IMG/VR virus record: IMGVR_UViG_3300023235_000008
Location: 62,001 to 126,000 of that record
Direction: 5' to 3' (one strand)
DNA length: 64,000 nt
A model generated the notes under the pieces. It did no database searches, was not told the origin of the DNA, and saw nothing but the letters and a program-made list of their open reading frames with translations. The stretch's first letter is position 1, and every line of letters begins with the position of its first letter. The position numbers and the translations under genes are program-made. Of the stretch, positions 37,071 through 42,704 are shown piece by piece.

Positions 37071-37903
37071 TTATCTAAAAAGACTAAGGATTGCTTGTTC
37101 AGATTGAACAGCAAGACTCAACGAGTTGTTAGCTAGTGCTTGGCGTGTCTGAAGAGCTAGCAAGTTAGCTGATTCTTCGTTTAGGTCTGCGTTGACCAAG
37201 TTACCAGCGCCTTCTTTGAGGCTGTTAATCATATTAGCTGTGAACTCTTCACGTGACTGAATCAACGCTGCATTTGTACCAAGCGTCTTAGCTGATGTAC
37301 GAACAGTTGACAATGCTGCATCAATCTTTGCGATATCAACATCAATGGCGGTCGTACCAGTTGCTATGGTGGCGTTTTCCCAATCACCAGCGTCGGTTAC
37401 TGCAAGACCAACTTGATCAGAAGCAATACCCGCAACCGTCAATGTTGTTGTGGTTTCGTTTAGCTTCACGGTCAAGCTATCTGGCGTAGCTTTCAGTAGT
37501 CCAACACCATTGAATGTAGCGTCTGCACTGGTGTTGTTGATCTGGTCAAGAATACCATCATATTGTGCTGAGAATGTAGTACGTTCTGCCACGCTTGAAG
37601 ATGCTTTAGCAGATTCAGCAACAGCTTTTGCTTGCTTTAGCAGACCTTCAATGGACTCTAGAGCATCAGTAGCTGTTTGTACAGTAACGATGTTGTTTGC
37701 TAGGTTTTCTTTTACCGTCAATAGATCGGATGCCGACTGCTTAAACCACGTGCAATAAAGAATGATGATGGATTATCAATAACATTGTTGACTTTCTTTC
37801 CTGACGAAAGGCGTCCTTGTGTCATTTCTAAGAGGTTAGTTGTATTTTGTAGTGAGTTTAGGTTACTGCGAATACTCGCAGATAGAGTTACTTCGTTTGA
37901 CAT
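37071..37903 (-). pseudogene. Alphaproteobacterial-type flagellin with a 1-nt deletion
   Basis: N-terminus VTLSASIRSNL..LQ.T..LL..TQ.RLSSGKKVN..DNP and C-terminus ADLNEESANLLALQTRQ.L...SLSLA.QS.Q.IL.LF. Adding one G at 37733-37734 restores SRASDLL and a 277-aa ORF. Confidence 0.88.
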
Positions 37904-38359: not shown

Positions 38360-38637
38360 TGATTAAAAATATATGGGCGTTTTGGGTAGAAACGTGGCAC
38401 GACAATAAGCCATTGTTTTGGTGTGAAGCCGTTGCCACAATAGTAAGCGTTATTGCCAGTTTCTTACTGGCGTTTCTAACCCCAACACCACCATTGCTAA
38501 TCATCTTTATCTGCTATCTTGTGGGTAGTGTGCTATTAATGGCAGCAATGTATATGAGAAAAAGCTCGTGGATGTTTGTTCTTATGGGATGGTATTCCTT
38601 AATGAACATCGTGGGCTTATTGAATGCAGCATTTTAG
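38359..38637 (+). CDS. Small membrane protein (3 TM)
   Basis: Three hydrophobic segments. Confidence 0.6.
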   Translation: MIKNIWAFWVETWHDNKPLFWCEAVATIVSVIASFLLAFLTPTPPLLIIFICYLVGSVLLMAAMYMRKSSWMFVLMGWYSLMNIVGLLNAAF

Positions 38638-38646
38638 GAGTGAATA

Positions 38647-40290
38647 TTGAGTTACGTTGACGCAATCTACGATAAACGAAATAACGTTGTTAAGGTAGTT
38701 GAAAGACTGAATGGTAAACGAATAGTAACCGAACATCCGTGTAAATGGACGTTTTATTATGACGATCCAGCTGGAAAGTATAATACTATTTTTCGTAATC
38801 CTGTTTCCAAATTCGAATCTGATAGTAAAAAGGAATTTCATCGTGAGTTGAAAAGTCGTAGTCAGACACGTGTATGGGAAAGTGATATAAATATTGTTAA
38901 TAAGACACTTGAACGTCACTATATTGGGCAGATGTCGCCCAAGCTAAACGTGTGCTTCTTCGATATTGAGGTTGACTTTTCGCCTACGCTTGGTTTTGCG
39001 CCACCCGATGACCCGTTCAATAAAGTAACGGCTATCTCATTATATTGTTCGTGGATGGATGAAATGGTTACGTTAGCTATTCCACCAAATACACTGACGC
39101 TTGAAGAAGCCGAGGCAATGATGGATTTCCCCAACACATACCTATTCAGTAACGAAGGGGATATGATTGAAACGTTCCTTGACTTAATCCAAGAAGCCGA
39201 TGTGCTTACGGGTTGGAACAGTGAAGGCTACGATATTCCGTATATGGTTAACCGAACGGCACGGGTTCTTAGTAAGAATGACACACGCCGTTTCTGTTTA
39301 CTTGACCAACTCCCAAAAGAACGTGAATACGAAAAATATGGCAAGATGCAAAAGACGTATGATTTACGTGGACGTATTCACTTGGATAGCCTATCATTGT
39401 ATCAGCAATATACCTATCACGAAATGCATTCGTATTCGTTGGATACCATTTCTGAATATGAACTAGGTGCCCGTAAAATCCAATACGCAGGATCGCTAGA
39501 TAAGTTATACAATGACGACTTTTATAAGTTCATTGAATACAACCGTCAGGATACTTTGCTATTAAAGCAACTTGATGATAAGCTACAGTTTATTGATCTA
39601 TGCAATGAAATCGCACACGATAATACAGTGCTTATTGCGGCAGCTATGGGTGCCGTTGGTGTTACTGACCAAGCCCTTATCAACTATGCGCATTCACTTG
39701 ATATGGTTGTGCCTAATAAGGTTCATTATGGCGACGACGAAGATCACCGTGCGGCTGGTGCTTATGTGGCGCATCCGAAGAAAGGCACACATAAATGGGT
39801 AGGTGCTATCGATATTAACTCACTATATCCATCGGCTATTCGTGCATTGAATATGAGTCCCGAGACATTTGTAGCACAGTTATTGCCTACACATACACGT
39901 CCGCTTATTGAAAAACGAATGGCTGAAGGCAAGTCGTTTGCAGGAGCATGGGAAGGGTTATTTGGTACACTTGAATATTCCTTTATGGATGATAAAGATG
40001 ATACCACACCACTCAAAGTACAATGGGCAGATGGCAAGCAAACCACACATACTGGCAAGGAAATTAACGATATTATTTTCCATGGTGGTGAAAAATGGGT
40101 AGTAAGCGGTAACGGCACAGTATTTGAGTATAATAAGCAAGGCATCATTCCCGGCATACTTGAAAAATGGTACGCAGAACGCCAAGAACTACAAGCCAAG
40201 AAGAAGGCAGCGGCGGTTATTGATGATTCTACCATAGAAGTACCTAATGATATTATGTCTAAACTTGGAAAGGATTTGATAGACGACTAA
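38647..40290 (+). CDS. Family B DNA polymerase, piece 1 (N-terminus, 3'-5' exonuclease, palm motif A, first finger helix)
   Basis: FFDIEV (ExoI), GWNSEGYDIPY (ExoII), YNRQD (ExoIII), AIDINSLYPS (motif A), GIIPGILEKWY.ER; then a stop. TTG start with AGGAG. Confidence 0.93.
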   Translation: MSYVDAIYDKRNNVVKVVERLNGKRIVTEHPCKWTFYYDDPAGKYNTIFRNPVSKFESDSKKEFHRELKSRSQTRVWESDINIVNKTLERHYIGQMSPKLNVCFFDIEVDFSPTLGFAPPDDPFNKVTAISLYCSWMDEMVTLAIPPNTLTLEEAEAMMDFPNTYLFSNEGDMIETFLDLIQEADVLTGWNSEGYDIPYMVNRTARVLSKNDTRRFCLLDQLPKEREYEKYGKMQKTYDLRGRIHLDSLSLYQQYTYHEMHSYSLDTISEYELGARKIQYAGSLDKLYNDDFYKFIEYNRQDTLLLKQLDDKLQFIDLCNEIAHDNTVLIAAAMGAVGVTDQALINYAHSLDMVVPNKVHYGDDEDHRAAGAYVAHPKKGTHKWVGAIDINSLYPSAIRALNMSPETFVAQLLPTHTRPLIEKRMAEGKSFAGAWEGLFGTLEYSFMDDKDDTTPLKVQWADGKQTTHTGKEINDIIFHGGEKWVVSGNGTVFEYNKQGIIPGILEKWYAERQELQAKKKAAAVIDDSTIEVPNDIMSKLGKDLIDD

Positions 40291-40312
40291 TCTCGTCTTT
40301 TGTCCTAAATAA

Positions 40313-40669
40313 ACCAAACAATATGAGTTTCTAAAAGAGAATGAAGTTGAAAGTCACCATTACCGTTATGACGGGCATTCTGTTAAAAATATAAAGTGCT
40401 ATAAGTATAAAGATTATATTGCTATTGGCGGCAAAAATATGATATCATTATTACAAGAGAATCAAATAGATATTCCAAGAAAATACGTGGATGATATAGA
40501 AATGTCTTTTCCTAAACCTCATCACAATATGCGTGAAGATAGGAAAAACTTTTTCGGTGAATATCACGGGAAATGCCTAAAAGATTTAGGTGTTGCCAAA
40601 TATAAACTCACAGAGATAGGAGAATTGAATGGATTTAGTCTCTACAATCCAAGACCTCATCAGCAATAA
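40313..40669 (+). pseudogene. Start-less degenerate ORF between PolB pieces (possible homing endonuclease remnant)
   Basis: Open frame of ~118 codons with no start near its 5' end; AT-rich; no motif firmly recognised. Confidence 0.3.
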
Positions 40670-41582
40670 CGAAACTGAAAAGTTAGAACAAGTGATGAGA
40701 GAAAACGATTTGGTTGTAAGAAACGGCAAGATTGAAAACAAAGATAGGGGTGCAGTAGCATTCCGGGATAAGCGGCAGTTGGTCAAAAAGATCAACTTGA
40801 ATTCGTAAATATTGCGACTTTATATAGTAATATATAATGAAAAACTCCTCTAACTGCGGGGAACTCTCACCGAGACAATCCGCAGCCAAGCCCGTAAGGG
40901 AAGGTTCAACGACTATGCGAAAGCAGTAGTATCAAGTGATACGAAACGGGGAGCAACCTTCAAGGTTGGTGATATAGTCTAATCTGTATGGCGACATACA
41001 GCAGTTCATGAGAGAACGCACATAAACTAACGACTTATGTGGAATATAAATGTGTATGGTGCTGTATTGAATAAGCATTGTCGTTTCTACGTCTTTGATA
41101 TCGGACAGTCAACCACACTAACTGGTCGGTGTATTGCAAAGCATATGTCAGCATACGTGAATCAATCACTGGCGGGTGAATACGATCATACTGGAAAAAG
41201 TATTGTGTATGGCGACACAGACTCAGAATTTGCCGAAACCATACACAAGACCAATTGGGGTGAGCTTACCGTAGAAGAATTGTTCAACCGAGGGCAGCGT
41301 TATTGGAATGATGCCAAGGATGATACAAAGGAATATAGTGCTAACGATGATTTGAAGGTTCTTTCGTATAACCCGGAAGAAGGCAAAGCGTATTACGGGC
41401 ACATCAATTATATCTACAGGCATAAGGTATCTAAAGAACAATGGGAAATTGAGGATCAATATGGTAATACCATTCGTGTAACTGGCGATCACTCAGTTAT
41501 GGTTGAGAGAGATGGCGTATTGATGGAAATAAAACCACGAGATATATTGAAGGATGATTTACTTATTACTACTACTGAATAA
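40629..41582 (+). CDS. Family B DNA polymerase, piece 2 (spliced 40629-40806 + 41053-41582): second finger helix, motif B, YGDTD, IntN
   Basis: ATG at 40629 after AGGAG. Splicing restores DKRQLVKKINLNSLYGAVLN. The spliced length is 708 nt, giving 235 aa. Confidence 0.85.
40807..41052 (+). mobile_element. ORF-less group I intron (246 nt) in PolB motif B
   Basis: P AACTGCGGGGAA, Q AATCCGCAGC, R GTTCAACGACTA, S GATATAGTCT. The exon ends in U pairing U.G with IGS GCGACTT, and the intron ends in G. Confidence 0.9.
41223..41579 (+). mobile_element. Split intein N-fragment (119 aa, Ser1, no Cys)
   Basis: Follows YGDTD; block B TGDHSVMV; stops at 41580-41582. Confidence 0.88.
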
Positions 41583-41701
41583 GGTCTTCATCATATGCTA
41601 CCAATAATGGATACGAGGTATTTGTTATCTGGGAAAATGATTGGTATCACGACCAATATACTATTATACAACGAGTAAAGGAATGGTGGAATGGAAGTTA
41701 A
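41583..41701 (+). pseudogene. C-terminal remnant of a Vsr-like (EDxHD-type) endonuclease between the intein halves
   Basis: Reads SYATNNGYEVFVIWENDWYHDQYTIIQRVKEWWNGS* with no start. Confidence 0.55.
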
Positions 41702-41822
41702 AAAAGCTAAAGTAAAATCTGTCAAACAGTTAGACAACTTTGATGATGAATATGTCTATGACATAGGCATGAAGAATGAAGAGCATCCATGGTTCTTCGG
41801 CAACAACATTCTCGTTCATAAC
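41691..41822 (+). mobile_element. Split intein C-fragment (44 aa, His-Asn, +1 Ser, no Cys)
   Basis: Block F YVYDIGM and block G NNILVHN/S. Confidence 0.9.
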
Positions 41823-42680
41823 AGCGTGTATTTTTCAATGTGGCCAGTTATCGAAGATGCGGTTAATAATGGTGAAATGGAATGGTCGAAAAAAATCTGC
41901 ACCGAAGTATACGATCAGGTGTCGGAAGCCGTAAATGAATCGTTTCCTCCGTTTATGAAGAAAGCATTTAACTGTCCGCAACATATGGGCGAAATCATTG
42001 AAGGTGGCCGAGAACTTATCGCAACAAAAGGATTGTTCATAAAGAAGAAGCGGTATGGTCTTATGATTTATGACGACGAAGGAACACGCCGTGATGTTGA
42101 TGGCAAAGAGGGCAAAGTCAAAGCTATGGGCTTGGACTTGAAGCGTTCGGATACGCCGGGGTATATGCAAGAATTTCTTATGGAAATCCTTATCGATGTG
42201 TTAACAGACAAAGAAGAAGATGAAATCATTGGTAAGATTTTTGACTTCAAAAAAGAGTTTGTAGAACGTCCGCCTTGGGAAAAAGGTACGCCAAAACGTG
42301 TGAACAACCTTACCAAGTACACCAAGATGTATGAAAATAAGGGCATGAAAGGCGTAATGATTCCCGGTCACGTATCGGCAGCTATTCATTGGAATAAGTT
42401 AAAAAAGTTCTATTCTGATAACTATTCAATGGATATTCAAGACGGTCAAAAGACTATTGTGTGTAAGTTAAAGAATAATCCGCTTGGATATACGAGCATC
42501 GGGTATCCGATTGATGAACCACATATTCCAGACTGGTTTAAGGATTTGCCGTTTGATAACGAGTTAATGCTTGCAACTATTGTGGATCAAAAAATTAAAA
42601 ACTTGCTTGGTGTTATGAAGTGGGATTTGGATACTAAAACAGACGTTACTTCGACTTTTAATACACTATTTGATGTATAG
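41691..42680 (+). CDS. Family B DNA polymerase, piece 3: IntC (44 aa) plus remaining palm and thumb
   Basis: VYDIGM..HPWFFGNNILVHN|SVYF; KKKRYG, KAMGLDLKRSDTP, KGTPKRVN. Confidence 0.92.
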   Translation: MEVKKAKVKSVKQLDNFDDEYVYDIGMKNEEHPWFFGNNILVHNSVYFSMWPVIEDAVNNGEMEWSKKICTEVYDQVSEAVNESFPPFMKKAFNCPQHMGEIIEGGRELIATKGLFIKKKRYGLMIYDDEGTRRDVDGKEGKVKAMGLDLKRSDTPGYMQEFLMEILIDVLTDKEEDEIIGKIFDFKKEFVERPPWEKGTPKRVNNLTKYTKMYENKGMKGVMIPGHVSAAIHWNKLKKFYSDNYSMDIQDGQKTIVCKLKNNPLGYTSIGYPIDEPHIPDWFKDLPFDNELMLATIVDQKIKNLLGVMKWDLDTKTDVTSTFNTLFDV

Positions 42681-42704
42681 TAATATACACACATAAATAG
42701 GTAT

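Follow-up and report, generated by a model that had tools for sequence, protein, structure and literature searches.

The question raised by this locus is whether a PolB DNA polymerase gene, which is interrupted inside its catalytic motif C by the two separately encoded halves of a putative intein, would still give rise to an uninterrupted polymerase motif through protein trans-splicing, and how this arrangement compares with the split inteins already known. The window analyzed here (64,000 nucleotides, bases 62001-126000 of the 230,059-bp IMG/VR virus record IMGVR_UViG_3300023235_000008, for which the CheckV completeness estimate is 65%) has a G+C content of ~40% and encodes a mildly acidic proteome. 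Its polymerase region is present in many salt-lake metagenomes, and the closest cultured relatives by PolB similarity are the jumbo phages PA5oct, SCTP-2, and Atu_ph07. Since a search of the phage collection for near-identical DNA gave no match, relatives were sought through protein searches.

We consider it highly probable that the window carries a genuine naturally split class 1 intein of the Ser1/Ser+1 (oxyester) type in PolB motif C. Trans-splicing of its N-terminal half (IntN) and C-terminal half (IntC) is inferred because the full catalytic set is conserved, the insertion site lies inside the YGDTDS motif of the sole polymerase found, and the flanking exteins are under purifying selection. 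The segments on which this reading is based are the following (window coordinates):

41053..41222, plus strand: exon 2 of PolB fragment B, the N-extein, from LYGAVLNKH... to ...IVYGDTD (motif C); Pfam DNA_pol_B positions 164-239
41223..41579, plus strand: IntN, 119 amino acids (SEFAET...TGDHSVMV...LLITTTE), no Cys, net charge -10, followed by TAA at 41580-41582
41691..41822, plus strand: IntC, 44 amino acids (MEVKKAK...VYDIG...NNILVHN), no Cys
41823..42680, plus strand: C-extein of PolB fragment C, from Ser+1 (SVYFSMWP...), comprising the palm end and the thumb; Pfam DNA_pol_B positions 273-339

The intein halves and their catalytic residues

A preliminary description, made from the DNA letters and their translations, had proposed a Cys-free split intein with Ser1, a His-Asn end, and Ser+1, of the Aes123 PolB1 type and inserted at YGDTD/S (the slash marks the insertion point). 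Its coordinates, lengths, motifs, and Cys count were all reproduced by translation, and the proposed type was supported by Pfam, by the match to PDB entry 9HTH, and by the alignment of the catalytic positions. The key residues of IntN are Ser1, Glu2, Thr6, His8, the NX motif Arg66-His67, and block B Thr87-Gly-Asp-His90; in IntC they are Asp24 of block F (VYDIG) and His43-Asn44 of block G, together with a patch of basic residues (KKAKVKSVK) at the N-terminus, and the +1 residue is Ser (41823-25). The Pfam model Intein_splicing (PF14890) was matched at positions 10-94 by the IntN ORF (open reading frame; E 4e-8) and at positions 118-155 by the IntC ORF (E 0.0077), and translation of the locus through its stops gave 53.6 bits with this model against a cut-off of 35.8 bits. 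The best match of IntN among the PDB sequences was 9HTH (E 4e-11), in which the halves of the Cys-less split intein Aes123 PolB1 are fused, followed by other, archaeal Ser1 inteins; IntC matched PolB16 OarG and 9HTH.

When the window intein was aligned with Aes123, PA5oct, an LCGC14-like protein, and metagenomic relatives, every catalytic position was kept, and Arg66-His67 of the window (YRHKV) fell opposite Lys-His of Aes123 (MKHTV). The NX motif, a His preceded by Arg or Lys, is specific to Ser1 inteins (Pasch et al., 2023; PMC10189870). The window intein has all the residues that mark a class 1 Ser1/Ser+1 intein, namely S1, T87-G-D-H90, D24 and H43-N44 of IntC, S+1, and the NX motif. Joining YGDTD to SVYFS yields YGDTDSVYF, which is PolB motif C as it occurs in uninterrupted PolB genes and in the exteins of the relatives; T4 gp43 reads GDTDSVY at this motif.

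The fold was modeled with AlphaFold2 on a natural cis relative (P0010, 76-sequence alignment). This contiguous intein is 55% identical to the window in IntN and 67% in IntC, its model had a mean predicted local distance difference test (pLDDT) score of 89.8, and the top structural match of the model was again 9HTH (E 5e-14, TM-score 0.86 by target). The break point of the window intein falls in the linker of P0010, which is the usual endonuclease loop.

For the IntN family search clusters at the 50% identity level were used, giving 681 clusters at E <= 1e-3 and 169 at E <= 1e-10, and the traits at the start and end of IntN were scored on the best 150 clusters. A recognizable D[TS]D/S start was found in 103 of these 150, all of which have Ser1 (103/103), and 111 of the 150 stop at the end of IntN, i.e., are split. 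The IntC search gave 102 matches, among which 38 short IntC could be scored; the terminal Asn is present in all 38 and the preceding His and Ser+1 in 37 each.

The residue at position 2, which had been described as atypical, is indeed so: among the 103 representatives Val occurs in 56, Ile, Cys, or Leu in 30, and Glu in just two (P0004 and P0010). These two Glu2 carriers are the closest relatives of the window intein. Positions 2 and 8 (window 41226-41228 and 41244-41246) covary across the family, with a hydrophobic-hydrophobic pair in most sequences, Glu2 paired with His8 in the window, P0004, and P0010, and Lys paired with Gln in three others. We read Glu2-His8 as a probably compensated polar pair and not as decay, and the covariation suggests a side-chain contact between the two positions beside the Ser1 scissile bond. 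The charge complementarity between the halves that had also been pointed out is a local and modest effect: there is a charge of +4 over residues 1-13 of IntC, with the Lys-rich patch conserved in the relatives, but all of IntC sums to -2 and the final 40 residues of IntN to only -3.

According to the mechanism that we propose, fragment B would, once a group I intron located upstream is spliced from its RNA, end in IntN, and fragment C would open with IntC, the two polypeptides being made separately from one operon. The halves would associate via their intein parts, possibly aided by the conserved Lys-rich start of IntC, and fold into the HINT horseshoe. An N-O acyl shift at Ser1 would then be followed by transesterification to Ser+1, cyclization of Asn44, and an O-N shift, and the ligation would restore the uninterrupted catalytic motif YGDTDS. 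Fragment A, encoded upstream, would persist as a subunit of its own, like gp43A of Aeromonas phages.

The break between the halves and the competing explanations

Contigs from four separate salt-lake samples, which came from different studies and years, were compared over window positions 38600-42700 and agree in layout, free of indels and joints. IntN, its stop, the spacer, and IntC are spanned by single records (40311-41790, 41220-41833, and the entire stretch), and the exact 181-amino-acid ORF bearing IntN is recorded on seven contigs. IntC has start signals of its own, with AAGGA located 8 nt upstream of the ATG at 41691 and an in-frame TAA 13 nt before this ATG. The locus shows the features of a naturally split intein: each half has an ORF to itself, IntN is closed by a stop, IntC is preceded by its own ribosome-binding site and opens with its own start codon, and the break is at the endonuclease loop.

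These observations bear directly on the explanation that the interrupted gene arose as an error of assembly or sequencing, or that it is a pseudogene decaying in a defective phage. Such an explanation would be favored by the four interruptions of the gene and by the origin of the genome from a metagenome assembly, but the identical layout in four samples and the recurrence of the exact ORF on seven contigs oppose it, as do the homologous arrangements in the cultured phages Aes123 and PA5oct. Moreover, the extein is under strong purifying selection between diverged alleles. In the exon tract 41070-41219 the proportion of synonymous differences between strains (pS) was 0.73, i.e., saturated, and that of nonsynonymous differences (pN) was 0.12, so that pN/pS was ~0.17, from which it follows that the polymerase gene is functional. 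An artefact or a pseudogene is therefore very unlikely. It is still less likely that the intein effectively acts in cis through read-through or recoding of the TAA codons at 41580 and 41676, which would produce one chain with a 36-residue linker. The two halves do share a reading frame, are 468 nt apart, and have just these two TAA between them. However, in two co-occurring strains (L014, 1749-2175, and L015, 470-813) a 10-nt indel at 41578-41587, within the zone 41572-41591, disrupts the frame relation between IntN and IntC and leaves an IntN tail (...LLITSETNICYQ, then a stop) that is five amino acids longer; read-through is thus not conserved. In relatives the same place is taken up by a whole gene for an endonuclease or by a spacer whose frame differs, TAA is not known as a recoding signal here, and other ORFs of the window end normally in TAA. 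In view of the indel variant and of the start signals of IntC, the read-through explanation was rejected.

A different alternative, which we regard as improbable, accepts the two polypeptides but takes the halves as a non-splicing, non-covalent dimerization module by which fragments B and C are kept associated, with the polymerase active without ligation. The atypical Glu2, the decay of the homing endonuclease, and the polymerase's existing tolerance of one non-covalent break, that of fragment A from fragment B, are in line with it. What argues against it is the retention of all catalytic residues (Ser1, the block B Thr and His, the NX His, the block F Asp, His-Asn, and Ser+1) both here and in more than 100 relatives. 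From what is known of PolB structures, an unspliced insert of ~163 residues in the metal-binding YGDTD/S hairpin is also unlikely to be tolerated. As for Glu2, it covaries with His8 and occurs as well in a cis-intein relative that must splice for its polymerase to form.

Several points nevertheless weigh against trans-splicing of the window intein. The phage is uncultured and appears to be known from DNA metagenomes alone, and Glu2 in place of the usual hydrophobic residue could in principle slow the N-O shift. Many natural split inteins perform poorly in vitro; splicing of wild-type Aes123 reaches ~30% (PMC11923092). Neither a second PolB nor a PolA was found in the 230-kb record; as the record is ~65% complete, a second polymerase could lie elsewhere.

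Relatives, cysteine content, and practical interest

Judged by its sequence, the window intein is a new member of the large and already described Aes123 PolB1/LCGC14 PolB2 family and not a new kind of element. Its IntN is 29% identical to that of Aes123, 43% to that of PA5oct, 46% to P0033 (LCGC14-like), and 65% to the nearest metagenomic fragment (P0004). An identical characterized intein, whose existence would have spoken against the preliminary description by its own terms, was not found; P0033 is the nearest characterized one.

With Aes123 PolB1 (engineered as CL/CLm; PDB 9HTH) the window intein shares the site DTD/S, Ser1/Ser+1, the His-Asn end, and the NX His. Both are free of Cys throughout and have their natural break at the endonuclease loop, and in both the host gene is in parts, which in Aes123 are arranged as gp43A, gp43B1-IntN, an intact putative VSR endonuclease, and IntC-gp43B2. 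The two differ in sequence (IntN identity of ~29%), in the length of the halves (119 + 44 amino acids in the window, 120 + 39 in Aes123), in positions 2/8 (Glu/His as opposed to Val/Ile in Aes123), and in the endonuclease, which in the window is a relic of ~40 codons. Unlike Aes123, the window host is a salt-lake jumbo phage and its gene has an additional group I intron.

LCGC14 PolB2 from a marine-sediment metagenome (Humberg et al., 2025; PMC12707363) is the closest characterized relative and has the same family, site, Ser1/Ser+1 chemistry, and typical split (120 + 42 amino acids in LCGC14). The identity of 46% over IntN was taken from the database protein P0033, as the sequences in the supplement of PMC12707363 were machine-read and garbled; P0033 is probably the LCGC14 protein or its cluster representative, since its IntN tail agrees with the printed sequence. 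IntC looks closely similar in the machine-read supplement sequence. The sequences are clearly distinct, and LCGC14 has one non-conserved Cys (removed as C24S), whereas the window intein has none. Fast and almost quantitative splicing was reported for the LCGC14 split intein; until then, according to Humberg et al., reports of highly efficient split inteins without Cys had been limited to a single one (PMC12707363).

The intein of Pseudomonas phage PA5oct, which is uncharacterized, also lies in a jumbo-phage PolB at the identical site, with Ser1/Ser+1 and both halves Cys-free (117 + 85 amino acids). The identity to the window is 43% in IntN and 54% in the C-extein, the latter by tblastn to the C-terminal portion of PA5oct's DNA polymerase; the PA5oct genes are annotated only as DNA polymerase, Hef-like homing endonuclease, and DNA polymerase. 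In contrast to the window, PA5oct has an intact 560-amino-acid DUF723/Hef-like endonuclease between the halves and an IntC with an N-terminal extension of ~41 amino acids, and lacks both the A/B split and the intron. The closest match of IntN in a cultured phage is the PolB mini-intein of Salicola phage SCTP-2 (49% identity), also from a hypersaline habitat. Unlike the window intein, it is a contiguous cis intein located two residues upstream (YGD/TDS), with a Lys-Asn end and Thr+1.

Among the relatives (L012, 2240-4882; P0001-P0003; P0162) some have two homologous inteins two residues apart, in the order YGD/intein/TD/intein/S. In these the upstream intein is cis and the downstream one is split; SCTP-2 has an intein at the upstream site only.

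Cys-free halves are common in the family. Of the 103 sequences scored for their start, 76 are split IntN, and 16 of these 76 are Cys-free, as are 30 of the 38 short IntC. Cys makes up 0.68% of the large ORFs of the window, which gives a probability of ~0.33 for 163 Cys-free residues. The absence of Cys from the window intein is not beyond chance; the non-chance feature is the Ser1/Ser+1 chemistry, which is a family trait. In the co-occurring strains L014 and L015 the extended IntN tail (...SETNICYQ) gains one Cys, so that not every strain is strictly Cys-free. The rarity that had been claimed for Cys-less split inteins holds among characterized inteins (PMC11923092, PMC12707363) but not in sequence space, given the 681 clusters, the Cys-free fractions above, and the PA5oct pair.

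Few Cys-independent split inteins have been characterized, and protein chemists want more mutually orthogonal ones. The window intein is a reasonable candidate to test, as no Cys would have to be removed, it is 46% identical to the efficient LCGC14, and its source habitat is saline. Dozens of natural candidates are as plausible as this one, which in sequence space is neither a rarity nor a surprise; its practical interest, as a sensible addition to the toolbox of Cys-less inteins, is moderate.

The endonuclease relic, the group I intron, and the rest of the polymerase gene

The locus is a compact history of mobile elements in an essential gene, in which a break of the gene is combined with a group I intron that has no ORF and with a split intein whose endonuclease has decayed. 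The remaining features of the gene are the following:

41579..41701, plus strand: 3' relic of a Vsr-like (DUF559/MTES_1575 type) homing endonuclease, a start-less frame of 40 codons ending in ...NNGYEVFVIWENDWYHDQYTIIQRVKEWWNGS and a stop
40807..41052, plus strand: ORF-less group I intron (246 nt) in PolB motif B (KxxxNS/xYG); Rfam RF00028
40629..40806, plus strand: exon 1 of PolB fragment B, with an ATG after TAGGAGA, ending in ...RQLVKKINLNS and the first base of a Leu codon
40291..40628, plus strand: gap of 338 bp between fragments A and B, with a start-less open frame of 118 codons (40313-40669) that overlaps the start of B
38647..40290, plus strand: PolB fragment A, 547 amino acids, comprising the exonuclease domain and the start of the polymerase domain, with its own TTG start after AGGAG

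The relic frame fills the 108-bp spacer (41583-41690), overlaps the start of IntC by 11 nt, and bears the AAGGA and ATG of IntC; the whole ORF of fragment C, IntC included, is 41691-42680. By BLASTP the relic matched the C-terminal end of the "putative VSR endonuclease" of Aes123 (residues 320-346 of 353, E 7e-5) and residues 286-312 of an intact 335-amino-acid endonuclease in the relative L010 (E 7e-7). Matches to the end of Pfam MTES_1575 (E 0.014) and to phrog_22677 (positions 316-346 of 353, E 0.035) were also found; the L010 endonuclease itself matches phrog_22677 at 8e-47 and DUF559/MTES_1575 weakly. The layout of L010 is fragment A, fragment B-IntN, the intact endonuclease, and IntC-fragment C. 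A second lineage (L012, IntC 78% identical) has a spacer of 118 bp with the same relic (...GFDVYVIWESDW...IKDWWN). The Hef-like endonuclease of PA5oct was rejected as the source of the relic, as the two have no similarity and the relic is of the Vsr type.

The arrangement is like that of the "fractured genes" (Dassa et al., 2009; PMC2677866), in which a free-standing endonuclease of the Vsr-like or GIY-YIG kind lies between the split halves, its 3' end overlapping the start of the IntC gene and also supplying it, and among which the gp41-7 locus already lacks the endonuclease. An intact endonuclease ORF, as fractured genes have it, is absent between the halves of the window intein, where there is just the 40-codon 3' relic with no start. 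Unlike in the fractured genes described, the window endonuclease persists as a recognizable 3' relic that is common to L012, and the relic in these two lineages documents a post-decay stage. The window locus is a post-endonuclease derivative of the fractured-gene arrangement. A free-standing Vsr-type homing endonuclease gene would have entered the endonuclease loop of a mini-intein by the fractured-gene route and would later have been deleted save for its last ~35-40 codons. Their retention is presumably due to the translation signals of IntC, namely its ribosome-binding site and its start codon, that they contain.

The group I intron matched RF00028 over the full model (1-253) with 105.8 bits and E 3e-27 (gathering score 50) and resembles common phage group I introns. 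Its splice sites are probably U40806, paired with G in the P1 helix UCGU/GCGA, and the omega-G at 41052. Exons joined at these junctions give KINLNS-L-YGAV, i.e., motif B as in the intron-less L010 and L012, which in the alignment read ...KKINLNSLYGAILN at the end of exon 1.

A comparison with strain L014 revealed a mosaic. From 39811 to 41069 (end of fragment A, gap, exon 1, and intron) the two are near-identical save for an insertion of 79 nt in L014 at 40310, and from 41220 to 41734 (IntN, relic, and start of IntC) they are near-identical save for the zone of the 10-nt indel. The exon tract between intron and intein (41070-41219) has 50 mismatches in 150 nt, and from 41735 onward the remaining IntC and the C-extein are divergent. 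In IntN pS between the strains was 0.00 over 68 synonymous sites. Over the genes farther downstream, the strain with the variant IntC has ~70-79% identity to the window, and in sample X2 the assembly breaks exactly at 41069 and 41208, with loose ends that carry the alternative allele. Diverged polymerase alleles thus have the intron and the endonuclease-less intein cassette in common at ~100% identity, which is the signature of recent exchange through recombination or homing-like conversion; chimerism of short-read assemblies may affect the longer-range linkage of the mosaic. It is conceivable, though rather doubtful, that the window holds a naturally Cys-free split intein that is adapted to salt lakes, efficient without engineering, salt-tolerant, and orthogonal to CLm and LCGC14, that Glu2-His8 is functional variation at the Ser1 site, and that the cassette and the intron are still spreading by recombination between lineages that are ~70% identical.

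Fragment A matched Pfam DNA_pol_B_exo1 (E 1.1e-21) and DNA_pol_B (positions 17-138), and the break between fragments A and B is at the same place in L010 and in Aes123 gp43A. In L010 the two fragments abut without a gap. The open frame in the gap (40313-40669) had no Pfam match and weak, sub-threshold PHROG matches, and is possibly the relic of another inserted gene. A scan for promoters and terminators was at chance level and no terminator-like site was seen between IntN and IntC. A weak hairpin with a T-run occurs at 40281-40298, directly after the stop of fragment A.

Two further inteins were observed in the same phage outside the window. One (L005, G000:C1:28254-31577) is a split Cys1/Cys+1 intein in a UDP-glucose/GDP-mannose dehydrogenase-like gene, with the junctions ...GMGDGGA/CVKSDF... 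and ...GIVIHN/CHPRD and an intact endonuclease ORF of 271 amino acids between the halves (weak Phage_endo_I/TnsA-like matches). The other (L006, G000:C1:220157-223684) is a contiguous Cys1/Ser+1 intein with an HNH-like insert and the junctions ...YNPL/CLDLST... and ...IYVKN/STNEDY...; its 980-amino-acid host ORF is portal-like, as judged by eye only. Within the window, a flagellin-like gene on the minus strand (37071-37903) consists of two overlapping ORFs, with Flagellin_N at 37718-37903 and Flagellin_C at 37071-37721, which suggests a frameshifted or recoded phage-borne flagellin homolog.

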